Shown here: positions 8,479 to 32,669 of the stretch, piece after piece
Layout of the letters: every line of letters starts with the position of its first letter
Numbering within the stretch: the first letter of the stretch is position 1
Virus record (IMG/VR): IMGVR_UViG_3300037882_003354
Location: 62,001-126,000 of that record
Reading direction: 5' to 3' (one strand)
Length of the DNA stretch: 64,000 nt
The notes under the pieces: model-generated
The model's database searches: none
What the model was told of the DNA's origin: nothing
The model's input: only the letters and a program-made list of their open reading frames with translations
Position numbers and translations under genes: made by a program

Positions 8479-11400
8479 TCACCTTCGAACGAAATGATAG
8501 TCGCCGTCCGGCCCATTGTTACAAAATATGCCCATGCAATCAAACCCCTGTTGGTGCATGTATGCTATCACTGGCAGGGCCAGGGGCGCACCCTTGTTGT
8601 ATTCCACAACCTGCAGTTCCAGTATGACATGATTGACTGATTTCAATGTCTCTGTTGCACCACGCAGCACATCCAACTCAGCACCCTGTACATCCATTTT
8701 GATTAAATCTGGTGGCGGAAACCCTCTTTGAGATACTATGGAATCCAGAGTACATGCGGTGAGCATTCGACGTATACTTTCAGGATACAACTGATCGGCT
8801 GCCGGGCTGAGTTCTGAATTTTCCCTGTAGTAACTGTTACCACCTGGGTTTTCTGTATTCTCATAAAAGCCGATTTCCCTGCCGTCTTGATCACTCAGCA
8901 GACCAATGTTGTATGTCATTCCGGCTTCTTGGTACAAGAATTCGCTGGCTGACATGGCTTCAAATGCTATGTATTCTGCATCACCCCACACTCGTTTGGC
9001 GCAGTTGGTCCAGTGTAACACGCATGCACCTATGTCATATATGACCCGTGGTGCAACTTTTAGATTTTGCTGCATGTGCACCAGATAGTTATAGTGGTCA
9101 TTGGGCAGTAGAGACATAGTGCTCAACTCTCGAAGTCTCCGTTTGACTGGATCTTCTGCAACAGCGGCTGGGATGTTGTTGTCCACTTGAAATGTATGCG
9201 ATCCAATGTGTCGGCATTGAATACTGGTATCAGCCCAGATCCTGAATCCCTTGGCCAGTGCTTTGGCGCAGAAGTCTGTGTCCTCAGATATGGTGTGAGC
9301 ATGGTCGATGGCCGAGTGATATTTAAATTGTGGGTATTCGATGGCCCTGATGACATCTGTCTTGACCAGCACACAGCCAAATCCGCATCCGGCAATCTCC
9401 ACCAGGCCGCGACCTTTGATCTTTTCATATGGAATGTTGGTGACACCGCCGCGTCCATTGTGCTCATAGAGTTCCAGGGTGTGTTCACCAAACTTGCGTT
9501 GTATGTACAGTCCTGACACCATGTCACAGTCATGAGCCAGCATTTTCTTGAGCGTGTCTCGATCAAATGCTATGTCACTGTCTATGGAGAACAAATAGTC
9601 GTAATTCATGGACCAGTGTGCAATGAGATTGCGCACTTGATCAATGTTATATCCGTAGAAATATTGGAATTCCACTTGATATCCATCTGGCACTTCCATG
9701 TCGTAGATGGATTTAAATGTGTCCACCTCGATGTTCTTGGCAGTGGGTATGCCAATTAGAATACGTTTCTTGACCGCAGGTACGGGTACAACCATGGATT
9801 CCACCGGCCTAATCGAGAGTGCAGGCACAGTTGGTGTCACCACTGCACTGGTGGACTTTTCCAAAACTGTGAGTCCGTTGTTATGAACAGTATGATATTT
9901 AAAACGCCATTCTGGATGTTGGATCATGAACTCAATGATGGCCGGCAACAGTCCAGGGCTATCTATTGTGCCTGTTGCAAATGTAAAGGTGTCATGAAAT
10001 ACAATGTATTTGTTCACTTTATTGTGGTGTCTGGTCAGCTCAGCAGACAGTTGTTCATAAGAATGATCAGTGTCTATGAACAGCAAATCAGTGGGCTCAA
10101 TGAGTAGTGTTCGCGTGTCTGCCGCAGCATATGTACAGTCCTTGCCCAGCTGTCGAGCAACATCAAACAGTCGACCGACTGATTCAACTAGATATAGATC
10201 ATAAGATGTTAGTTTGCAATCACTCACCAACCAGGCCCTGGTTGACGAACCGTTTCTCACACCAAACTCAGTGACGGTCTTGCATTCGCCCGCCAGTTTT
10301 CTCAGTAGTGGCAAGTGTTGGTTGATGTCACTGGGCGATTGGCATTCCAATTGATATTCGTGTTCTAATATGTCCGTGTTGTTCATTTTAAGTTTTTCCT
10401 GTTCATATACAATTCTTTCTCGCTCTAAAAAGCCATCAGTGATGTCAGTATTGCCAGTGGTGGCGGCAAATGTGCCAGTGAATTTCATATTGGTTATGAA
10501 ATAATTTGTGCGTCCTTTTTTCAACTGTAAATCAAAGATAAAATTATCACCGTAATATATATTCAGCCCTGGGGGAATGTCCTGCCAGATGCTTCGGTGC
10601 AGAAACATCAGGCATCCAAACCCATAGGTATGCTGACCAGTCCAGGGCAGGATGTCAATGGCACCGTCAGTGATGGCTGGCTGATCAAAATCAGGTTCAC
10701 CGGGACACAGACCAAACACTCCGTTGGCTGGAGTCAGCAGATCTTCCAATCTGGAGAATACATCCAGATCGAAATACATGTCGTCGTTGACTATACAAAT
10801 CCTGTCATTACGAGCCACCTTGACACCCAGATTCCAGGCTGGGTTTACGTAGATGTTGAGCCCAAAGTCAAACATATGGATCTTGGCATGATCGGCCACA
10901 CCCACCGGTGTTCGGGTGGTGTCGTTGTTGATGATGATGACCTCATCAACAGCAGGGTGATCGCATAACCGGGCCAGGAAGGAGACAAACTCTGCAGGAC
11001 GGCGCCACATGGTGGGTACAATTACAGAATACTGTTTGACTGTGGATCGAGTGCTGATGATTCGAGCGTTGATGTTCTGCTCCTCTGCATTGACCTTGTA
11101 ATCGTTCAAGGGGTTGGCATCGTTGTAGTTGTACACCACATCCTGCAGACATTTGACCCGGTTGGGGTCAGCCGCCTCAATCAGTGCGTAGAACACAGCA
11201 CCGTCGCCACCGGCCTTGAACCATTGCCCTTGCGGATCCTGGAACAGGGCATCTGGCAGATCATTCACCAGATGCTTCTTGAAGGTTCTCAAGTGTGTGT
11301 AGGGCAAGATCCAGTTGAAGTGGTGATTTCTGTAATCACGATTTTGTTTGACTGCCTCGGGATACGGCTGACTGATCAAGGGTATGTTGTCCACCATGCT

Positions 11401-22627: not shown

Positions 22628-22885
22628 TCATGCAGGTGATTCCGTGGTTTTTGGGAGTAAAATTTCTTCCACCAACTGCACCACTCCACGCACATTGTAA
22701 ATTTTACTGGCCCGGTGTTCTGGCAACTGTATGTTGAAGTGATCTTCCACCACCAGAACCAGTTCCATGTAGTCCAGACTGTCCAAGCCTAGATTTCGTT
22801 TGAAATGGCTGTCCATGGTGACTGAATCTTCGCGCATGCGCAATTCCCTGGCTATAACTTGTATGATCTGCTGTTCAATGTTCAT
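22628..22885 (-). CDS. acpP: acyl carrier protein
   Basis: 85 aa with LGLDSLDYMELV (phosphopantetheine Ser) and FNIQLPE motif. Confidence 0.9.
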   Translation of the reverse strand: MNIEQQIIQVIARELRMREDSVTMDSHFKRNLGLDSLDYMELVLVVEDHFNIQLPEHRASKIYNVRGVVQLVEEILLPKTTESPA

Positions 22886-23668
22886 TTATGTCTTGATGTA
22901 ATTTAATAGTATGCTGTGATCACGGTGATCAGGGTGCCAGTCTGGGCGCATGAATTCCAGCACGGCACAGGTGACTGTCCAGAACACACCACATTGACGG
23001 TCAAACAACACGGCAACTGCATCCTTGAGTGTGCGCCATTTCCACAACTGGCCATCTGATCGCAGGAATATCACGGTGTTTTTCATCACATGGTACATGT
23101 AACACACGTAAACCAACAACATGACCCATCTTCTGTGATTGACACCGCCATCCACCAGTTGCCATACGTTCATGGCCACTGACTTGTGCTCGATTTCTTC
23201 CACGGCGTGCCAGCGCCAGATGGTTTCAAAATGTGGATGCATGCGGCGCAGAGCAGTTCTGTATCTCAGCAGGTATTCTGCATTGACTGCTGTCATGTGC
23301 TCAATGCACACAGTGGCGGTCAAACACACGCGATCGCTCCAACGTGTGCGTAGATGGGACCAAAATTTGTGCTGTCGCTGGGCCGCAGCCTGTGCCGGTA
23401 ATCCCTGCTGCTCCAGCCATTGTGTGTACTGTGCATGCACATGACCGTGCCAATTTTCCTGTTTGACAAAGGTATTGAAATCCACCAACTGCGCAGGATC
23501 TGTCACAGCGTGCCGATAGGCCTTGAGTGAATCTATGAAGAATCGTTCCCCGTCAGGAAAGTTTATATTCAGGGAATTCAACCAGTGTGTTTTGAATGGG
23601 CTGCCATCATTCCAATAATATGGAAGTTCTTGATCCCAATCTAATTTCAGTGGCTGTGACGTAAACAT
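22886..23668 (-). CDS. ferritin-like di-iron protein ('predicted metal-dependent hydrolase' family)
   Basis: FPDGERFFIDS, QENWHGHVH, IEHMTA, WHAVEEIEHKSVA: E / ExxH / E / ExxH ligand pattern. Confidence 0.8.
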   Translation of the reverse strand: MFTSQPLKLDWDQELPYYWNDGSPFKTHWLNSLNINFPDGERFFIDSLKAYRHAVTDPAQLVDFNTFVKQENWHGHVHAQYTQWLEQQGLPAQAAAQRQHKFWSHLRTRWSDRVCLTATVCIEHMTAVNAEYLLRYRTALRRMHPHFETIWRWHAVEEIEHKSVAMNVWQLVDGGVNHRRWVMLLVYVCYMYHVMKNTVIFLRSDGQLWKWRTLKDAVAVLFDRQCGVFWTVTCAVLEFMRPDWHPDHRDHSILLNYIKT

Positions 23669-23678
23669 CAGATATTTA

Positions 23679-24446
23679 TCATGGATTATTCACTGATGTG
23701 ATGATCCAGAAATCTGAACTCATGCTGGTATTCTGCACCACTTGGTAGGGCATGTAGAAGTAACCGCGGTCACCCCAGCCGGTGCCCCAGGAATTTCTTG
23801 CTATGAATTGCTGAGTGCTGTCTCGATAACCCACCAGGGCCACCGCATGTCCCCCCAGCAACCGTTCTGTTTGAACATTGGGGTAGGGCATTTGTCCTGT
23901 ACGTGCCACCGCCAGGGTTTGAAAACTTGAATACACATTGAATCCCATGACCACAGGGTATCCCTGCGCCAGGGCTGTCTTGACTCCATCAAAGTCGGTT
24001 ATGCGACGATAGGCACCCACTCGTCGTTTGAGAGCGTCTTTGTATGCTGCCGCGCTGGGCTTGATGGCGAACCTGCCAATGATATAAGGCCACAGGCTTT
24101 CCAAGGGTGCACCAAATTTGTTCACAGCCTTGATGCCGTCTCGCAGGTAGGCGCCACTGTCATAGTTCACTGTGCCGTACAGCAACCGCTCCTGGTAATA
24201 GATGAACAGTCGGCTGACGTCCAGATTCTTCTTGGCTTTACGATTGAGGTATTCAACTAGTCCAGCAATGGCCTGGCCAGTGCATGATCCCAACTGCCCT
24301 TGGTTTTCTATGGGGCTGCATCCCGGTCTTAAATCCACCAGCGCAGGTAATGCCAATTGCGGTGCAGCATACAAGTAATCCCTGGCATCTGGTGGATCTG
24401 GACGCCAGTGTAATCGGGGTATGGTTATATTAGTTGGACGTGGCAT
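23679..24446 (-). CDS. papain-like (C1A) cysteine protease
   Basis: QGQLGSCTG, GGHAVALVGY, RNSWG catalytic motifs; start moved to 24446 (AGGA SD). Confidence 0.9.
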   Translation of the reverse strand: MPRPTNITIPRLHWRPDPPDARDYLYAAPQLALPALVDLRPGCSPIENQGQLGSCTGQAIAGLVEYLNRKAKKNLDVSRLFIYYQERLLYGTVNYDSGAYLRDGIKAVNKFGAPLESLWPYIIGRFAIKPSAAAYKDALKRRVGAYRRITDFDGVKTALAQGYPVVMGFNVYSSFQTLAVARTGQMPYPNVQTERLLGGHAVALVGYRDSTQQFIARNSWGTGWGDRGYFYMPYQVVQNTSMSSDFWIITSVNNP

Positions 24447-24505
24447 GTGTTTTTTCCTGGGTTGACTGTGCAAAAATCATTATAAGATTGTGAATAAGAT
24501 TTACG

Positions 24506-27500
24506 TCATTGTATGCTTACCAAATCAACATCCAACCTTTCTAACTTGTTGTGCACATAATCACTAATATATTCAGCGGTATACTGTGCAGGTTGTTCTT
24601 GTAGACGTAATCCTGAGATGTATTTGGGATCAATGTTGGCAAATTCTTCTAAAGATCTCAACGCTCTGTTGTCCTTGACAAACTTCATATCCCGAATAGG
24701 ATAGATGTTGTTAAATCTATTGCTGGTCAATATGCCTTGAGCAAACAGATTCAAGTGATACTGGGTCCATACGTTGTAAAACTTTACAGGTTCTTCAATA
24801 GTTTCTTTGGAAATCAGTGTGACTTCTTCACCCTGTTCATTAAATGTAATAGTTCCCACTGGCGTGGTATCTCTAACCAACATGGTAAACGCACCTGCTT
24901 GTTTATTAAACACATGGTGTCCCACTGTGCGTAACACAGTTCCATCACTGAATGTAAATCGATAGTGTTTGTCATGTGTTTCTTCCTGTTTAACAAACAC
25001 TGGCAATGCTTCGCTAAACTCACCCAAGTCAAAGTTCCATACACGAAGTAAATCATTGTACCTAACGTCCTCAATGGCTTTATATGAACCGTCAGCCATG
25101 GTGACCATGGTACCTTCGACCAGGCAAACCACACTCCATGCTCCTGTGTAGATATTACTAGTACATCCATTGAGTCCCGAGTCAATGGTTATTTGGGTAG
25201 TCAAATCACTCCCACTGCCATATAACCCAAGATCGGGCGATGTATATGTATTAGCACCAGGATTGACTGTCAGGGTGTGAGGGCCGCTAAATTCTCCGCC
25301 GCTGAACCATTCAAAGAAAATAGTACCTGTCGTGGATGTTGAAACAGTGGACGTAAAATCAACAGTTGCTGCCCTACTTTCAAAACCCACTGACACGTTG
25401 GTTATTGTCATAGTTGCCGGCACAATCACTGGCACATCAACACTTGTGGTCACACCGTTATTGGTGGTAACACGAGCAGTGGCGTCAACAGTTGGCGCAA
25501 CTGATCCCAAGAACAGTCGAGTATTTGCATCAACAGTATATGTTGTTGTGGGTATAAATGGTGCCAGATACTTGGCCGTGTTGCTGATTCTAACTAAAGA
25601 CATCTTACCGCTTAAGGTGCCACCGTTTGCTGGACCCAGTCGACCTATACGCAATGGGTCTACAGAGTTGGTATAACTGGCTGTGCCAAATGTACCACTA
25701 ACCTTGGTCTGTTCAATACCATTGTACCAGACCGTTTGTGTGCTTGCGTTGTTGACTATGGCCACATGCGTCCATACACCTGGAGTAGGTTCGGTGTATC
25801 GGACATCTTCGTTAGCGCCACTACCTGATAAGAATACCAGTTTGTTATCGCTCAATGCCACAACCACGGCGTTGGTGGTACTCCAGCCCACTTGGTTTAA
25901 TAATCCCCAGATGCCGCCACCCGCTGTATCTGATGCGGCATTGGCTTTGAGCCAGAACTCTATGGTCCAAGTTGTGCCCAGATTAAACGGAGCATTTGCA
26001 GGGTCATACAGGCTGTAGTTTTCGTCCATGTATAAATTGTCTGCCAACTTTGGAGCCCAGGTCAGGTCCCAGGTTGTGCCACCATCTGAGACGCCTGTGA
26101 GCGTTACTTGATAGGGTACACCAGTCCCCTGTTGGCCAACGAGTATCCAGCCCACTTGTGGTTCTGGATAACTGCCTTTGAGGATATCACCACCTGATAT
26201 AGTGCCGCTCCACGCATGACTGGTGGCGGTGCCCAGCGCGGTGTAACTTGGCTGTGCCACTGATAGGTAATCGTTTTCACTATTTACAAACTGTAGACTT
26301 TGATAACTTGGAAAGTCATTGCTGATCACTGCTCCATTATTGGTAATAGAATGTCTAGCACCACTGAAGTTGTATGGACCAGGAGTGGGCACATTAGTAA
26401 CTGGTACTCCCCAATTGTCAGGATCTGCTGAGACTACTGCTCCAGTGACAGTTGCGGTAGTTGATGTGTTTAATGAACTTACTATATCTCCTGCCTTTAT
26501 TTGATTATTTAAATTGGGATATGTTGACTTAGAGAAATACATGGTATCTAAATTATTAGTAAATATCGATACTTCATTCAACTCATAATTAGATAGATCG
26601 GTCAGCGGACTATCACTGCCCAACATCAGTCGAGTGTCTGCGCCAGCACCATAGGACAACGATGGGCTAAAGTTTGCCAGATACGTGGCTGTGTTGCTGA
26701 CTCGGATCATGGCCAGTTTACCAAGGAAGCCTTGCCCGTTCACTCCTAGTCTACGGCCAATGTTTACATCCGATGATCCATCACTTAATGCGCCTGGGCT
26801 TACTATGGTTCCCTGATGTACTCCATTATAGTATACCTTGGTGTCACCACCCCCATTGGCCACATAGGCCACATGGTTCCATATTCCCGGTGTGGGTTCA
26901 GGAATTCCGCTCTGTTGGACATTTCTGAACAGCGTGCTTCCATACATAAATCCTAAATCTATCTTGCCAGCGTCCGGACCTTGTGACATCACAGTTCGTA
27001 TGTTGCTGGTGCTGGCATTGGTTTGTTTGCTCCAGAACTCAACGGTGTATGTTGTGCCCAGGTTCCAATCAGCTTGTGTGTTGGATACCAATAGATATGG
27101 ATTTCCTGCTGGGAAGTCTAGACTAAATGGGGCCACTAGTGATAGACTGGTGTCGTTGATGGTGACTGAAGTGCTGGTGCTTAATATTGTGCCGCTGGTG
27201 CTAGCCGAACGCAGGGCAACCGTGAATGTCTCACTGCCTTCAGTGGTAGTATCAGCAGTGGGTGTTACTGAGAATGAACCGCTATTGCTGGTAATGCTGA
27301 ATGATCCAAATGTTGTACCAAAATCACCCGTGTTGGTTTGAACAGTCCAATAATACGTTCCGTTGACAATGTTTGTACCTGTGACATTAAATGTTATTGC
27401 TGAACCTTCGTTAGTGCTGGTTGTTGCTGGTGTTAAAGTATACAGGGGTGGTGGGGGAGGGGGAGGTGTATAACCACCACTGGACGCAATGGCTCCCGCT

Positions 27501-27520
27501 AATGTTTGAACAATGCTCAT
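24506..27520 (-). CDS. adhesin: Calx-beta-like + 2 LamG domains + C-terminal Hint domain
   Basis: NEG..ITF..TEG.ETFTV (Calx-like); TVEFW/TIEFW..WxHVA (LamG); CLVEGT..TVGH..FYNV..ILTSN (Hint). Confidence 0.8.
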   Translation of the reverse strand: MSIVQTLAGAIASSGGYTPPPPPPPLYTLTPATTSTNEGSAITFNVTGTNIVNGTYYWTVQTNTGDFGTTFGSFSITSNSGSFSVTPTADTTTEGSETFTVALRSASTSGTILSTSTSVTINDTSLSLVAPFSLDFPAGNPYLLVSNTQADWNLGTTYTVEFWSKQTNASTSNIRTVMSQGPDAGKIDLGFMYGSTLFRNVQQSGIPEPTPGIWNHVAYVANGGGDTKVYYNGVHQGTIVSPGALSDGSSDVNIGRRLGVNGQGFLGKLAMIRVSNTATYLANFSPSLSYGAGADTRLMLGSDSPLTDLSNYELNEVSIFTNNLDTMYFSKSTYPNLNNQIKAGDIVSSLNTSTTATVTGAVVSADPDNWGVPVTNVPTPGPYNFSGARHSITNNGAVISNDFPSYQSLQFVNSENDYLSVAQPSYTALGTATSHAWSGTISGGDILKGSYPEPQVGWILVGQQGTGVPYQVTLTGVSDGGTTWDLTWAPKLADNLYMDENYSLYDPANAPFNLGTTWTIEFWLKANAASDTAGGGIWGLLNQVGWSTTNAVVVALSDNKLVFLSGSGANEDVRYTEPTPGVWTHVAIVNNASTQTVWYNGIEQTKVSGTFGTASYTNSVDPLRIGRLGPANGGTLSGKMSLVRISNTAKYLAPFIPTTTYTVDANTRLFLGSVAPTVDATARVTTNNGVTTSVDVPVIVPATMTITNVSVGFESRAATVDFTSTVSTSTTGTIFFEWFSGGEFSGPHTLTVNPGANTYTSPDLGLYGSGSDLTTQITIDSGLNGCTSNIYTGAWSVVCLVEGTMVTMADGSYKAIEDVRYNDLLRVWNFDLGEFSEALPVFVKQEETHDKHYRFTFSDGTVLRTVGHHVFNKQAGAFTMLVRDTTPVGTITFNEQGEEVTLISKETIEEPVKFYNVWTQYHLNLFAQGILTSNRFNNIYPIRDMKFVKDNRALRSLEEFANIDPKYISGLRLQEQPAQYTAEYISDYVHNKLERLDVDLVSIQ
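24719..25126 (-). other. Hint (hedgehog/intein-like) autoprocessing domain
   Basis: Cys1 codon at 25124-25126, block B TVGH, block F/G FYNVWTQYHLNLFAQGILTSN ending at 24719; followed by Arg and a 70-aa tail. Confidence 0.8.
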
Positions 27521-27529
27521 TGTTGATCC

Positions 27530-30500
27530 TTAATCGTTGTCGTAAATGTCAGCACCAGCAACCATCCAAACGTCACCGTCGTTTTCACTATCGTCTGAAC
27601 GTGTGCCTTCTCTGATCTTGATTAAGGTAATCATTTGTCCACTACCGTTGTCTGGGAATCGAATCCACTGAGTTTTGGTATCGCCTCCTGACAACCACAT
27701 CTCGCCTCGAAGGCCGTCATTTTCACATTCTACATAAGCATCGTTGTTGCTGATGTTGACCAAGGTCACAGTATATCCCACGGGCAGTGTGACTCGTTCC
27801 CAGTTGGGAATAATCACATCATAGTTACTGTCTTCAATAAGAATATGTCTGCCTGAATCTTCAGGACGTAGCATATAACGACCAGCACTGATTCTCACCT
27901 GCGGTACAATGGCTGTGCTGAATGTCTGACGACTACCATCGGCAAACTCAACAGCACCGCCTTGGTTGCTCCGGATCACCTGTGGATAGAATGTGAAGTC
28001 ATAGTCAGGATAGTCAGTGTAGTAATATTTCACGTTGTCCACGCTGGTAATACCACCAGTATGCTCTGTGGCAGTAAATGCGGTCGATGTTCTACCACTC
28101 AGTCTCCAAACTTGGATTCTCTCATCGTCAAGTTCCGCATAGGTCCATAAACCGTGTAGGCCAACGCCCGTGCCGTCCAATGGCAGTGTGACAATGAACG
28201 CATTGTTATCATTGTCATCATTTGGAGCATCAGTAAAGCCCACCAAGGTAAACTGGTCACCGTGTATACTCAGGGCCTTGTTGCCATAACCCTGATAGCA
28301 CATTTGCGTGTCACTTTCATGAACGCCAAATAGACGCTTCCAAATGACTTCTCCATCAGTGTCTAGTTTGACAATCGCAATGGCCTGATCGTTAACCAAA
28401 TCACTACCGTCATCGTGTTCACAAGCAATTACAATCTCATCTGTGGCAGGATCCACTGCCACACTGATGTTGCTTTCTGGACTTCGCCACTGGCCATTAC
28501 CGTTTTTATAACCAATGAACTGTTGCCATATGATGTTTAGACTGCTGTCTAACTTGGTGACCAACACTTCGTCAGTCTCATCATGGTCCTGGTTATACTG
28601 ATCGTGAACTACCACAATTGAGTCGTTGGCCATCAGGGCCACTGCTCCTCGATTGGCAGAGTTGTTGCCCAGGTTGTTGTTGAGGAACTTGCTGGCTACC
28701 AATGTGCCTGTGCTGGAAAACTTGACCACCAGAGCTTGGTCATAGTTGACTTCATAGGTGCCTTGACCCACGGCATACAAGTGTGTGCCAGCCGCGTTCC
28801 AAACAACACCAGTGAAAGCATCGTCGGTTATGCCACCAATGGCCTTGGTAAAGTCCGGAGTCCAAACAAATGCCTCCCCATCCATGTTCTGCTTGATGGC
28901 AAATGTTGTGCCGGTTGCAGCATAGTCAACACTGGCATCGGTGGTTAACTGTAGGTGTGTTGATGCATGTGTGCCAGTTGAAGTGTCAATGTCTATAATC
29001 GCGCCGCCGGCGCCATCAGCATTGGTAACTGTTACGGTGATATTATTAGCAGGTGCTGTGCCACCAGCAAAACTTGTTCCTAGAATGGTAATAACATCAC
29101 CAGTAACATAGTCTTCACCAACAGTGGCAACTTGGGTACTGCTAACGGTTCCAGTAGTTGGATCAAAGTTTATATTGAATACCGCTCCAATACCAGTTAG
29201 ATAGTTGGTGCCTGTTACCAATGTGTATTGCGTAGATGTACCAGTTGAAGTTCCACTGTTGCTCACACTACTTATAGCACCCGAAGTTGAAGCGTCCACT
29301 GTAATGATACAATCGTTAGTACCATCCACTCCACCCAGTGCCGAACCTAATACTTTGATCTTGTGTCCTACTAGATAGTCTGTACCGCTGTTAGTAATTG
29401 CCGTGACAGAGTAAGAGCCGGTACTGATAACTTCATATGTGATTGACTGCGGCACTTCGTTTAATCCCTCAGTACCAGAAGCCCATACTCCAGTCCAAAT
29501 CACATCCACTCCTGTGTTAGTTGTTTTGTTATTAGTTGTGAATGTCTGAGGGCCACCACCTGTAATAACTGTGAATACTGTTCCGGTAGACAGGGCTTCA
29601 AAAGTATCGTAGTCAGTACCAATATTCCAATCTGCCTTGGTGGCTGTGATAGTAGCAACGCCGGGTTCTCCCACAACACTTAGACCAACTCCGAATGAAG
29701 TCGATGTATAAGTAGTACTGGTACTAGTCCCAGTTTTATCAATGGTGAACACTGCACCACTACCCTGTTTAACTGTGCCAGTCGATCCTGTATATTGGTT
29801 TACCGTCTGAACTCGAATCTGGTCAGTGATACCAGTGCCAGTAATCCACCAGTCACTAATACTGCTGCCGCCCGGAATATCTTCCCCTGGAAAGTGTTCA
29901 GCATCAATGTCTGCCTTGGTAACCCAAAGTTTATCTACCGCACTGCCCGCCAATGGAGTAATAGTACCGTATTCTGTGTATTCGTTGAACTTTTCACCCA
30001 CAACAGCAATCTTACCAGTAACACTGACATCAGTGTCGATAGCGTAGACATCACCTTCATCTTTAAGCGTAGTTGTGCTGACCACTGCGCCTGAACCTGA
30101 ATCCATGGTTACGATCACTGTTTCTGACCAGTTGCCGTCAAGGTTAAACATGTCAGAGTCACCCAACTCTGTTGAAGTTATGATGATGACCTCAAGGTTG
30201 CCAGAGACTGGATTGTAGGTCATTGACCTTATTTCGCATTCCGCGTCGTCATTATAGTCTTGAACGGAGGTATATGTATTTGAATGGCCAACTGCGCCGG
30301 TGCCGCTGTCAATAGTAACTGTGGCTACTTCTCCAACATAGTCATTAGCATTGGTAATAGTTGCTACTTCTAACACCAGTGTATTACTGGCATCTCCTCC
30401 AAGATCCTCACCATCGATAAGGATCCTATCACCCACTTTATAGTTATTGCCGCCATAGGTCACTATGGGAGTAGCATAGGTGCCGGTTGTAACCGTCACA

Positions 30501-32446
30501 GTGAACTCAGCACCCGAACCGCTGAATAGTTCTCTCTGCCATACTACCGCACCTTCTGGGGTAAATTTATAAATGTAGGCGCGGTCTCCGTCAAACCAGT
30601 TACTGCCCACGGCATAGGCAAAACCTTCAGCATCGTGACATACACTTTCAAACCAAATGTCACTGCTTGTGTTAGGGAACCTGCCGTACATGGTGGCGTA
30701 GCCCAACTGACGTTGTTGCAGTCGAATGTCAGCATCTGCTGGTGCTGTAAATGTGCCGTCCTTGCCAAATGTCCAGGTGTTGACCCGACTGGCTGTGCGT
30801 CTCACACTGACACTCACTGCCTGTGTGGCGATACTGGCCGTGCCGCCTTCAGTCATGGCAATATCATTTTGTAGAGACACTGGACCGTTGACTGCCACCA
30901 GAGTGTTGGTCAATCTGCCGGGAATACGGCTTGTTGACAGTGTCCAACCATCTGCTATGAATTTGGTGGCATCGGTGTCAAACTGTGCCAAGAAGCCTTG
31001 ATTAAAGTATTTTTCGTAGCTCCACGGTGCGTCAAGATCTGCGTCACTTTGGCCAAGTCTTACCGCACCACCAATAAGAATCTTCCCGTCTTGTACAGCC
31101 ATTAAGTCTGTGGCGACTCCGCCAAATGGACCATCGTTACCATATCCTGGAACTTCTTGTGCCAACGGATTGTCAAAATAACTTTGCCAAATCACAGCAC
31201 CTGTGGTCTTGTTGTATCGGGCCAAGGCCAATCGATTGGTGTAATAGCCTGCATCACTACCTTCTACTTCGGACAGGGGGTTTAATTCGTAGGTGCTGGC
31301 GTATAGATATAGATCACCGTCGTCGCCCACTGCGGTGCTGACACCAACCCAATCACACGCTCCTGGACCAACTCTACGATCCCAGGCCATGGCACCCAGT
31401 GTGGTCATCTTGAATAAGACAACAGCATTGCTTTTACCTGAAGAAACAAAATTGTCGCCTGGGTTGTCCACATAATATGTGCCGGCAACATAGATGTTGC
31501 CAATTGAGTCGAGACTTAGATTCCAGGCCTCACCAAAAGGTGTGTCATTTTCCAGTCTCACTGACTTTTGCCAACCCGATCCGCCAAGGGCAGTGATCTT
31601 GGCCACTAACATTTCGTCGTTTGTAGCAGTGGCTCCGTTGACTGTGCGTTCAACTTCAGCTTTGCCCACCGCAACGATGTCGTCATTGAAATCAACTGCC
31701 ACTGAGTAAATGCTTGAGGCACCGCTGTCAACAGTCAAAGACTTTTGCCAAGTGATGTCAGTGGCAGTAGGGTTCAGTTTGGCCACAAACGCGGTAGTAG
31801 TTGCGGCGCTGGTGAAATAAAAGTCGCCACCAATGATGATGTTGTTGCCACTGTCAACTGCCATGGCCCGGATCTCGAAATTGCTGGCCAAGTTCAATTC
31901 TTCACTGAATACAACAGCACCAGTGTCACCGTTGAGTTTAACAATGATCTTAGTGGTACCACTGTCTGGATTTACCACAAGCAAGATGTTATCAGCACTG
32001 TCAATCACAGCATTGCTTTCTGGGTAGAAGCCATTGTCGACAGCATCTATGCTTTTCTTCCAAACCAAGTGACCTGCTGGTGTAAACTTGGCAACTGCCA
32101 CACCGTCATCGTTTAGATTGAGTCGAGCAACAACAATGGCGTTGCCCAGACTGTCGTAGTTGGTGCTATAGACTGTGACACCTTTAGTGGCAACTGGGTT
32201 GCTGCTGTCTTCTCTACGCAGTCGAACCAACCAACGATCCGCATCGCCAGTTTGAACTGTGATAGCACCGTCACTGGCCAGATCATCGCCAACACCGTAT
32301 TCAAGTGAATTCCAACGGCTGGTACCGTCACCATACTTGATCTTGCCAGTGTCGGTTTCTAAACCTGGTTCACCAGCCGCCAGTATGGGATTGACACTGG
32401 TCCAGTTGGCCTCTGTGTCTCTGCGTAGTTTAATTCGTGTTGCCAT
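27530..32446 (-). CDS. giant tail fibre with Mtd_N-type anchor and beta-propeller repeats
   Basis: Start moved to 32446; RIKLRRDT..NW...NP.LAAGEPGLETDTGKIKYGDG..W (Mtd_N/hyaluronidase-N type), repeated 'vaKl...G...WqK' blades. Confidence 0.8.
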   Translation of the reverse strand: MATRIKLRRDTEANWTSVNPILAAGEPGLETDTGKIKYGDGTSRWNSLEYGVGDDLASDGAITVQTGDADRWLVRLRREDSSNPVATKGVTVYSTNYDSLGNAIVVARLNLNDDGVAVAKFTPAGHLVWKKSIDAVDNGFYPESNAVIDSADNILLVVNPDSGTTKIIVKLNGDTGAVVFSEELNLASNFEIRAMAVDSGNNIIIGGDFYFTSAATTTAFVAKLNPTATDITWQKSLTVDSGASSIYSVAVDFNDDIVAVGKAEVERTVNGATATNDEMLVAKITALGGSGWQKSVRLENDTPFGEAWNLSLDSIGNIYVAGTYYVDNPGDNFVSSGKSNAVVLFKMTTLGAMAWDRRVGPGACDWVGVSTAVGDDGDLYLYASTYELNPLSEVEGSDAGYYTNRLALARYNKTTGAVIWQSYFDNPLAQEVPGYGNDGPFGGVATDLMAVQDGKILIGGAVRLGQSDADLDAPWSYEKYFNQGFLAQFDTDATKFIADGWTLSTSRIPGRLTNTLVAVNGPVSLQNDIAMTEGGTASIATQAVSVSVRRTASRVNTWTFGKDGTFTAPADADIRLQQRQLGYATMYGRFPNTSSDIWFESVCHDAEGFAYAVGSNWFDGDRAYIYKFTPEGAVVWQRELFSGSGAEFTVTVTTGTYATPIVTYGGNNYKVGDRILIDGEDLGGDASNTLVLEVATITNANDYVGEVATVTIDSGTGAVGHSNTYTSVQDYNDDAECEIRSMTYNPVSGNLEVIIITSTELGDSDMFNLDGNWSETVIVTMDSGSGAVVSTTTLKDEGDVYAIDTDVSVTGKIAVVGEKFNEYTEYGTITPLAGSAVDKLWVTKADIDAEHFPGEDIPGGSSISDWWITGTGITDQIRVQTVNQYTGSTGTVKQGSGAVFTIDKTGTSTSTTYTSTSFGVGLSVVGEPGVATITATKADWNIGTDYDTFEALSTGTVFTVITGGGPQTFTTNNKTTNTGVDVIWTGVWASGTEGLNEVPQSITYEVISTGSYSVTAITNSGTDYLVGHKIKVLGSALGGVDGTNDCIITVDASTSGAISSVSNSGTSTGTSTQYTLVTGTNYLTGIGAVFNINFDPTTGTVSSTQVATVGEDYVTGDVITILGTSFAGGTAPANNITVTVTNADGAGGAIIDIDTSTGTHASTHLQLTTDASVDYAATGTTFAIKQNMDGEAFVWTPDFTKAIGGITDDAFTGVVWNAAGTHLYAVGQGTYEVNYDQALVVKFSSTGTLVASKFLNNNLGNNSANRGAVALMANDSIVVVHDQYNQDHDETDEVLVTKLDSSLNIIWQQFIGYKNGNGQWRSPESNISVAVDPATDEIVIACEHDDGSDLVNDQAIAIVKLDTDGEVIWKRLFGVHESDTQMCYQGYGNKALSIHGDQFTLVGFTDAPNDDNDNNAFIVTLPLDGTGVGLHGLWTYAELDDERIQVWRLSGRTSTAFTATEHTGGITSVDNVKYYYTDYPDYDFTFYPQVIRSNQGGAVEFADGSRQTFSTAIVPQVRISAGRYMLRPEDSGRHILIEDSNYDVIIPNWERVTLPVGYTVTLVNISNNDAYVECENDGLRGEMWLSGGDTKTQWIRFPDNGSGQMITLIKIREGTRSDDSENDGDVWMVAGADIYDND

Positions 32447-32465
32447 TACTCTGCTCCGATTATTT

Positions 32466-32669
32466 TTATGCTGTGCCGCCGTCCAACTCAATGTCTATCA
32501 GTGGATCGTATACTGACCCAGCGTACAGTCCATCCAGTGCATATAATGCCTGTTGAGTGGTCAAGGCCTGCTTTGCAGACCAGCGATCGCCAGTCCAGAT
32601 GTAGGTGACTGTATTGTCTGCTAGATAGTTCTGCCCCACTGCAGGGTTGACTGGGAAAATTATTGCCAT
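32466..32669 (-). CDS. small fibre-anchor-like protein
   Basis: 67 aa FP.NP..GQ.Y....TY.W.G..W motif; late promoter CATAAATA 32686-32693. Confidence 0.7.
   Translation of the reverse strand: MAIIFPVNPAVGQNYLADNTVTYIWTGDRWSAKQALTTQQALYALDGLYAGSVYDPLIDIELDGGTA

Follow-up and report, generated by a model that had tools for sequence, protein, structure and literature searches.

The stretch analysed here, referred to as the window, comprises 64,000 nucleotides (bases 62001-126000) of the virus record IMGVR_UViG_3300037882_003354, which is 322,512 bp long, has direct terminal repeats, and is rated complete. The minus strand of the window carries a gene, P0001, for a fibre- or adhesin-like protein of 1004 residues which ends in a Hint domain followed by a tail of 70 residues. 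This Hint-tail module (Cys799 to Gln1004) represents an abundant Hint subfamily, as yet uncharacterised, whose members have a conserved extension built in. Hint chemistry underlies inteins, the lipidation of Hedgehog proteins, and the ubiquitin-like conjugation of the BUBL type.

Read towards its C-terminus, the protein presents the junction VV/C799-LVEGT, the block-B motif T865-V-G-H868, the end of the last Hint strand, FAQGILTS-N934, and then R935, which opens the 70 residues that lead to the stop codon. All of the elements reported in a preliminary description of this locus, i.e., the lectin domains, Cys1, the TxxH motif, the SN/R ending, and the tail of 70 residues, were found where it had placed them, and the span that it singled out, 24506-25140, corresponds to the Hint-tail module together with the five residues upstream of Cys799. 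The neighbours on the same strand are fibre-type genes, with an Mtd_N protein upstream and PA14/GLEYA, LamG, and collagen-repeat proteins downstream, and matches to head and tail PHROGs lie farther along in the window. Given the lectin domains and these surroundings, it is reasonable to label the protein a putative phage adhesin.

The Hint core and its conserved tail

With residues 790-1004 as the query, HMMER was run exhaustively over 1.84 billion cluster representatives to find relatives of the module, and it recovered 3264 representatives of clusters at 50% identity with E <= 1e-3, and 541 with E <= 1e-30. In the best 150 of these relatives, the match spans the query from about position 7 to positions 190-213, i.e., the Hint domain and most or all of the tail, and it nearly always ends within some 30 residues of the C-terminus, in proteins that range from 250 to approximately 2000 residues. 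The Hint domain and the tail are one conserved C-terminal unit. The conservation of the tail had been proposed in the preliminary description as a check on its interpretation, and the tail is co-conserved with the Hint domain in all of the 150 best relatives.

The AlphaFold2 model of the module, which was built on these 150 relatives, has a mean predicted local distance difference test score (pLDDT) of 95.3 and a predicted template modelling score (pTM) of 0.91, with a beta core at model residues 5-139. The best match to the Protein Data Bank (PDB) found by phmmer is the BIL2 Hint domain of Tetrahymena BUBL1 (6y75, E 2.6e-6). Foldseek returned 63 PDB matches at E <= 0.001, of which the 50 listed first all have a Hint fold (as BIL domains, inteins, or Hedgehog proteins), in an order that begins with the BIL2 domain of 6y75 (E 2.6e-11), continues with the BIL domain of Clostridium thermocellum (2lwy, E 1.1e-9, TM score by target 0.87, root-mean-square deviation, rmsd, 1.9 Å) and the mini-inteins, and then reaches the Hedgehog structures 6tyy and 1at0 at E ~3e-6 (3.2e-6 for 1at0). 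Against the Swiss-Prot models, Hedgehog proteins come first. The Hedgehog alignments that reach into the tail have an rmsd of 8-11 Å, so that only the Hint core truly superposes. The core, as modelled, is confirmed as a genuine Hint domain, with a fold match that lies beyond chance.

The columns of the alignment, counted over 151 modules, bear out the same identity, given that the predicted nucleophile, Cys799 (Hint residue 1), and the block-B histidine, His868, are each found in 151 of the 151 modules, and Thr865 in 143. Trp828, Phe830, and Asp831 are near invariant, His922 is found in 148 modules and Asn924 in 150, and the segment ILTS (930-933) is also near invariant, with Ser933 in 150 modules and never a His at this position. 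The residue that precedes Cys1 is Ile, Leu, Pro, or Val, and not Gly. The mean column conservation of the core is 0.69, compared with 0.23 for the nine residues before Cys799, and conservation falls away exactly upstream of this residue.

None of the Hint models of Pfam and NCBIfam gave an above-threshold match to the window protein or to its relatives, and the assignment of the module to an existing curated Hint family was rejected, as all of the scores are sub-threshold. The pretoxin model PT-HINT (PF07591) scores 14.1-17.1 bits (reaching 16.8-17.1) against a cut-off of 27.7, with E values of 0.007-0.06. The Hedgehog model PF01079 has no match at all in the window protein, and it is touched by 45 of the 150 relatives, which is the most of any Pfam Hint model, with a best E of 3e-6 and all of the matches below the cut-off (the scores read were 19.0 and 21.8 bits against 29.7, over profile positions 11-109 only).

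The end of the Hint domain departs from that of a class 1 intein in three respects. In the place of the Cys, Ser, or Thr nucleophile at position +1 the module has Arg935, with an Arg in 142 of the 151 modules, in the place of the terminal His-Asn the window protein has Ser933-Asn934 and the family mostly Ser-Cys, and instead of lying within a conserved host protein that continues as a C-extein, the module sits at the C-terminus of unrelated architectures, with a tail that co-varies with the Hint domain and not with the N-terminal protein. The Arg at +1 excludes splicing, in agreement with the preliminary description. Position 934 is occupied by Cys in 100 modules, Asn in 31, Met in 7, Ser in 4, Ile in 3, Leu and Thr in 2 each, and His and Trp in 1 each, and the Asn is characteristic of the clade of the window protein (all of the relatives at least 54% identical but one), with ten distant relatives in addition. 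The HMMER alignment to 6y75 stops two residues short of the mutated Asn143 of that chain. As position 934 is variable, and includes hydrophobic residues, the cyclisation of an Asn and C-terminal cleavage are not a trait of the family, and with splicing also excluded the tail is a permanent part of the Hint domain and not a C-extein. Given this, the SN/R ending is real in the window protein, but it is specific to its lineage and does not represent a degenerate HN/C junction shared by the whole family. Hog domains have, where inteins have motif G, a motif J that contains a Cys (PMC2362128). A Cys closes the last Hint strand in the majority of the family, which may recall motif J and serves as a lead, and the window protein itself has an Asn there.

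The near-invariant residues of the tail are Arg935, Asn938, Tyr940, Pro941, Ile942, Met945, Lys949, Gly970-Leu-Arg-Leu973, Glu975, and Gln976, with Asn938 and Glu975 found in all 151 modules and Gln976 in 148. In the model of the module, the tail forms a short hairpin and helices, with a pLDDT of 94-98 except at the last residues, and this value drops to only 76.6 when the tail is folded alone, so that it appears to depend on the Hint domain. The tail is hydrophilic, with a grand average of hydropathy (GRAVY) of -0.66, a maximum 19-residue hydropathy of 0.05, and no hydrophobic segment. No relative of the tail was found in the PDB by profile search or by Foldseek (the best VIA-align Z is 3.0), and no match to it in Pfam or NCBIfam, and a feature search of the ESM Atlas with the tail returned Hint-family clusters only, probably from context. 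With a hydrophilic tail that matches no solved structure, nothing marks a region for the recognition of sterols or lipids.

The tail is shortened to about 45 residues in one subfamily (L074 and L076-L080, e.g., L074:10001-10483 and the next 22 residues), which keeps the proximal motif SC-K/R-LSN-x-Y-R-I-E-x-M-K-Y, lacks the GLRLxEQ motif, and has an insertion ahead of the block-B His.

Table 1. Features of the Hint-tail gene and of the neighbouring genes, in window coordinates
Feature	Position	Strand	Basis or remark
Precursor gene P0001, fibre-/adhesin-like	24506..27520	(-)	1004 residues; open reading frame list and translation
N-terminal cargo, residues 1-798, predicted mature protein	25127..27520	(-)	Hypervariable among relatives
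Laminin_G_3 (concanavalin-A-like lectin) domain 1, residues 139-278	26687..27106	(-)	PF13385, E 1.7e-21, 77.4 bits against a cut-off of 27.6
Second lectin-like region, residues ~497-716	25373..26032	(-)	Second Pfam Laminin_G_3 stretch; phrog_3545, E 1.7e-21
Hint core, residues 799-934	24719..25126	(-)	AlphaFold2, Foldseek, phmmer
Cys799 codon TGC, Hint residue 1, predicted nucleophile	25124..25126	(-)	Context VV/CLVEGT; alignment columns
Block B, Thr865-Val-Gly-His868 (TxxH)	24917..24928	(-)	Alignment columns
Asn934 codon AAT	24719..24721	(-)	Aligned with the terminal Asn of inteins and BIL2; last Hint strand ILTS-N934
Conserved 70-residue tail, Arg935-Gln1004	24509..24718	(-)	Column counts; stop codon at 24506-24508
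Upstream neighbour, 1653 residues, with Mtd_N (major tropism determinant N-terminal) domain	27530-32491	(-)	
Papain-family peptidase (Peptidase_C1)	23679-24473	(-)	E 4.8e-15; homologue in 6/80 loci
PF10118 'Metal_hydrol' gene	22886-23668	(-)	Homologue in 0/80 loci
Acyl carrier protein (ACP; PP-binding)	22628-22885	(-)	Homologue in 0/80 loci
Multi-domain protein of 1540 residues	8479-13101	(-)	PHROG glycosyltransferase, methyltransferase, and phrog_1574 matches; 5/80 loci by tblastn

Distribution, variable cargo, and gene neighbourhood

The module is known from metagenomes, from the bins of metagenome-assembled genomes (MAGs), and from IMG/VR, and none was seen in isolate genomes; among 50,697 records of GenBank phages, neither megablast of window positions 24000-28000 nor tblastn of the module found a match. 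In the bacterial genome collection, only MAG bins gave matches (L082-L110, assigned to Proteobacteria, Clostridia, Bacteroidales, Tenericutes, and Gastranaerophilaceae), and giant-virus labels are attached to the IMG/VR GVMAG contigs L067 and L069 and to the best BFVD match, A0A3G5A239 (Gaeavirus sp.), at 46% identity. The carriers with such bin labels are probably phage contigs that were mis-binned as giant viruses or bacteria. The relatives listed are named 'hypothetical protein' or after their N-terminal domain, or they are unnamed. Bacterial (Bacillota) proteins with an N-terminal S8 peptidase or Flg_new repeats also end in a structurally equivalent Hint domain and tail (TM score by query 0.82-0.88 over residues 1-206/209; AFDB R7K4E9 residues 1045-1276 and ESM Atlas clusters), which indicates that the unit is not confined to phage fibres. 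There is one copy of the module per genome in all five of the records that were searched whole, three of which are rated complete (that of the window and two of 355 kb), and four of these five were chosen through loci already known to carry the module.

The N-terminal parts of the family range from approximately 45 to 1800 residues, and the domains recognised in them are Laminin_G_3, PA14/GLEYA, collagen repeats, Mtd_N, PF07953, DUF285, and PF06598, or none at all. In 31 relatives whose modules are 86-97% identical to that of the window protein, the N-terminal parts vary from 222 to 1217 residues with the order of the domains rearranged, and their identity is 38-67% in 30 of the 31 and 81% in one near-identical relative. 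The Mtd_N domain of the upstream neighbour also occurs at the N-terminus of some of the Hint-tail relatives (P0018, P0225, and P0233) and in some of the genes just downstream of Hint-tail genes (L009:885-2405).

The genes around the module were compared in 80 IMG/VR loci. The neighbours that the preliminary description had named as speculative donors of an adduct are present, i.e., the PF10118 gene, the ACP, and the protein of 1540 residues that contains a glycosyltransferase, and the analysis of the gene neighbourhood that it had called for found no conserved donor gene. The ACP and the PF10118 gene were rejected as conserved partners or donors, as all 80 of the related loci lack both (Table 1), and for the PF10118 protein, which the preliminary description had taken for a di-iron enzyme, no PDB relative was found by sequence. 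The glycosyltransferase protein fares little better, with a full-length counterpart (68% identical) in a single locus (L003) and, in four others, a weak match restricted to its residues 1169-1309, and it was rejected in turn. The gene for the papain-family peptidase starts 33 bp past the stop codon of the Hint gene, and a cysteine peptidase is unusual in a fibre block. Its homologues are 52-71% identical and lie between 40 bp and 9 kb downstream of the Hint gene, and with so few loci and such variable distances it was not retained as an obligate partner.

In the five loci with modules at least 86% identical, three non-homologous sets of acyl or lipid genes are found just downstream, within about 3 kb. 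The first is the PF10118 'metal-dependent hydrolase' and the ACP of the window (22628-23668, minus strand), the second a methyltransferase with an AMP-binding enzyme (L003:11471-13518), and the third a fatty-acid desaturase (PF00487; L002:5841-6548, L014:405-1109, and L075:239-946), homologues of which occur within 10 kb of the module in nine loci. In L002 and L014, primase and helicase genes follow the desaturase, and in the clade at 66-72% identity the genes downstream of the module are further fibre genes, for which reason the spot looks like a variable island that ends the structural block. A functional link between the Hint-tail module and the acyl or lipid genes is weakly indicated.

Probable self-removal of the module and the competing explanations

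The 206 residues from Cys799 to Gln1004 are probably an autoprocessing module that cuts itself off the precursor by a thioester-mediated cleavage at Val798/Cys799. Following the folding of the precursor, an N-to-S acyl shift would take place, with Cys799 attacking the carbonyl of Val798 and Thr865 and His868 assisting, and the resulting thioester would be resolved, most simply by water. The products would be the mature lectin-rich protein (residues 1-798) and a free Hint-tail fragment of about 23 kDa, in which the tail would remain joined to the Hint domain, with no splicing. The module would be a constant and disposable cassette on a fast-changing receptor-binding protein, comparable in function to the C-terminal domains that remove themselves from other phage fibres. 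The conserved C-terminal domains of phage tail spikes and fibres known as intramolecular chaperones of the Peptidase_S74 type are removed autoproteolytically after folding through a Ser-Lys dyad. The present module resembles them as a conserved, disposable C-terminal domain on diverse phage fibre proteins and differs in its unrelated fold and chemistry, a Cys thioester being predicted here, and no S74 domain was matched in the window protein with Pfam or PHROG.

The last strand of any Hint fold comes to its end close to residue 1, which would place the start of the invariant proximal tail (Arg935, Asn938, and Tyr-Pro-Ile) in or near the active site, and a role for this segment as a part of the catalytic pocket, or as its gate, is likely. 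The acyl shift itself is carried out by Cys1 and the Thr and His of block B in inteins, BIL domains, and Hedgehog proteins (PMC8616854, PMC7664689). In BIL domains the +1 nucleophile is lacking and cleavage products predominate (PMC7664689), and the BIL2 domain joins the ubiquitin-like domain at its N-terminus to lysines by an isopeptide bond (PMC8616854). These domains (6y75, 6tmm, and 2lwy) are the best matches of the module in both sequence and fold, with TM scores by target of 0.80-0.87, and the module has in common with them Cys1, the TxxH of block B, the two features by which they are recognised, i.e., the lack of a +1 nucleophile and the variability of the host proteins, and the fact that these hosts are not housekeeping proteins. 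On the other hand, the identity is only 18-23%, the BIL2 domain has a functional terminal Asn followed by another domain, whereas the Asn position is not conserved in the module family, and the BIL structures lack the extension of 70 residues, so that the alignments end at about model residue 140.

Several points weigh against self-removal as the whole account. The analysis establishes the fold, the catalytic residues, the pattern of conservation, the C-terminal position, and the copy number. The occurrence of cleavage, the nucleophile that would resolve the thioester, and the role of the tail are inferred, and the same applies to catalytic competence, given that the position of the intein block-F Asp is occupied by an Asn (Asn916) in 150 of the 151 modules. 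The tail, whose proximal part (934-960) has a mean conservation of 0.70, is as conserved as the core, which a plain self-cleaving Hint domain would not need, and this hints at a further function, such as the selection of the nucleophile, docking, or regulation. The complex predicted for three copies of the module scored 0.00, which bears neither way on a chaperone-like oligomer. Simple self-removal also leaves unexplained the association with HAD_SAK_2 (PF18143), a gene for about 163 residues (62-69 bits against a cut-off of 27.5) that is the commonest immediately downstream. In 30 of about 108 loci it lies directly downstream of the Hint gene, in the same orientation and frequently with an overlap at the stop codon of the latter (e.g., L022:5274-5762, L060:10585-11079, and L064:10600-11040), and at least two proteins have it as a fusion behind the tail, namely an open reading frame of L067 (module 10001-10588, followed by a further 150 residues) and P0141 (residues 465-593). 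HAD_SAK_2 was not found in the genome of the window. The preliminary description had offered self-removal as a folding chaperone or ligation as the two outcomes, and self-removal is now the leading reading, with the chaperone part supported neither way by the trimer prediction and ligation as a less likely alternative.

The alternative that survives best, and which is nevertheless unlikely, is a transfer of the Hedgehog or BUBL type, in which the thioester at Val798 would be resolved by a specific nucleophile other than water. This nucleophile may be the hydroxyl of a lipid or sugar, an amine of the cell envelope, or a lysine of another virion protein, and the C-terminus of the adhesin would be tagged or cross-linked, with the tail as the region that recognises the adduct. 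The layout fits the definition of the Hog domain, i.e., a Hint domain with a sterol recognition region (SRR) or an adduct recognition region (ARR) (PMC2362128), and the likeness to Hedgehog proteins (1at0, 6tyy, and PF01079) extends to a variable cargo, a Hint domain with Cys1, an extension of approximately 70 residues that is not cleaved off, and a module better conserved than its cargo, with a tentative further resemblance to motif J in the Cys with which the last Hint strand commonly ends. The nearest solved relative, BIL2, conjugates to lysines (PMC8616854), the tail is conserved like the core and has the invariant polar residues Asn938 and Glu975, and the five closest loci have three sets of acyl or lipid genes downstream.

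Against such a transfer, the tail is hydrophilic and resembles no solved structure, nor does it show any demonstrable likeness to the sterol-recognition region of Hedgehog proteins, which, unlike the module, have a known adduct (cholesterol), and the alignments with Hedgehog proteins that span the tail are no true superpositions. The matches to PF01079 in the members checked are sub-threshold and cover just the first half of the profile, Foldseek places Hedgehog after the BIL domains and the inteins, and the module has an Ile, Leu, Pro, or Val before Cys1 where Hedgehog has a Gly. In addition, the window protein lacks a Cys like that of motif J, the ACP and the PF10118 gene are missing from the related loci, and the spot downstream resembles a variable island. 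What stands of the Hedgehog-like arrangement of a Hint domain and an extension is the layout and the co-conservation of the tail; the core is nearest to the BIL domains, and the tail bears no signs of sterol or lipid recognition. A little less probable still is the stronger form of this proposal, in which the module would be a phage counterpart of the Hog domain, with a dedicated tail for adduct recognition and the energy-free ligation or lipidation of a virion protein, and possibly a relative of the ancestor of the Hog domain.

It is improbable that the module is a structural domain that does not cleave, such as a fibre tip or a docking knob, in which the catalytic residues would be used otherwise or stand idle. 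Such a role is consistent with a module whose compact, well-formed fold and high conservation would be expected of a domain for binding or docking, with the change from Asp to Asn in block F, and with the indirect nature of the case for cleavage. However, the constancy of the Cys and the block-B His, together with the near constancy of the Thr, is difficult to account for if there is no catalysis, variation would be expected in a receptor-binding tip, whereas no other part of the protein is as conserved as the module, and the boundary of conservation falls exactly at residue 1.

A selfish terminal element related to the mini-inteins, which would close a fibre gene at its 3' end, keep the host protein intact through N-terminal cleavage alone, and persist without benefit to the phage, has very little to recommend it. 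The module occurs once per genome and at the C-terminus of unrelated architectures, it is far better conserved than its host protein, and the chemistry of N-terminal cleavage is all that is conserved, each of which would suit such an element. Even so, neither a domain nor a gene for a homing endonuclease accompanies it, HAD_SAK_2, which is often its neighbour, is not a nuclease, the tail conserved like the core would be needless for a parasite that merely cuts itself off, and the five whole phage records, four of which were reached through module loci, each have exactly one module, with no empty genome among them, as a fixed feature would and a sporadic insertion would not.

Finally, the module recalls the pretoxin HINT domains (PF07591), which are proposed to release the adjoining part by autoproteolysis (PMC3417536), in that its Hint domain lies close to the C-terminus of long and variable surface or fibre-like proteins, and it differs from them in the constant tail that takes the place of a polymorphic toxin, in its single copy per phage genome, and in the downstream gene, which is the papain-family peptidase in the window or HAD_SAK_2 in many relatives and not of the immunity type. 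The release of a C-terminal effector in this style, with the Hint domain freeing the tail or, in some relatives, the HAD_SAK_2 domain, is the least credible of the explanations, because the freeing of C-terminal toxins proposed for the pretoxin domains (PMC3417536), the weak similarity to PT-HINT, and the HAD_SAK_2 fusions behind the tail are set against a position 934 that varies and includes hydrophobic residues, with no conserved residue for C-terminal cleavage, a tail that is constant and folds against the Hint domain, a PT-HINT score below the cut-off, and no immunity-type gene following.

Significance of the Hint-tail family

The overall interpretation of the preliminary description is thus retained in part: a protein that does not splice, a probable thioester, and a layout like that of the Hog domain remain, and the degenerate intein junction and the ACP and glycosyltransferase donors are given up. 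The family is a large Hint subfamily, with at least 3264 clusters at 50% identity, for which there is no curated model and whose tail has no solved structure. What is new here is the Hint domain and a conserved extension as a single unit, with which the most variable fibre or adhesin protein terminates in a group of very large uncultured phages.

If simple self-cleavage is the true function, the module would be a compact and portable self-removing tag, and its first residue would mark the real C-terminus of receptor-binding proteins, which matters for both annotation and structural work. If, on the other hand, the tail selects the nucleophile, the module would represent the first case of Hog-like ligation beyond the eukaryotes, and it would bear on how the Hog domain arose. 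The contrast in conservation between the cargo and the module also provides a handle for spotting the receptor-binding gene in phages of this kind.

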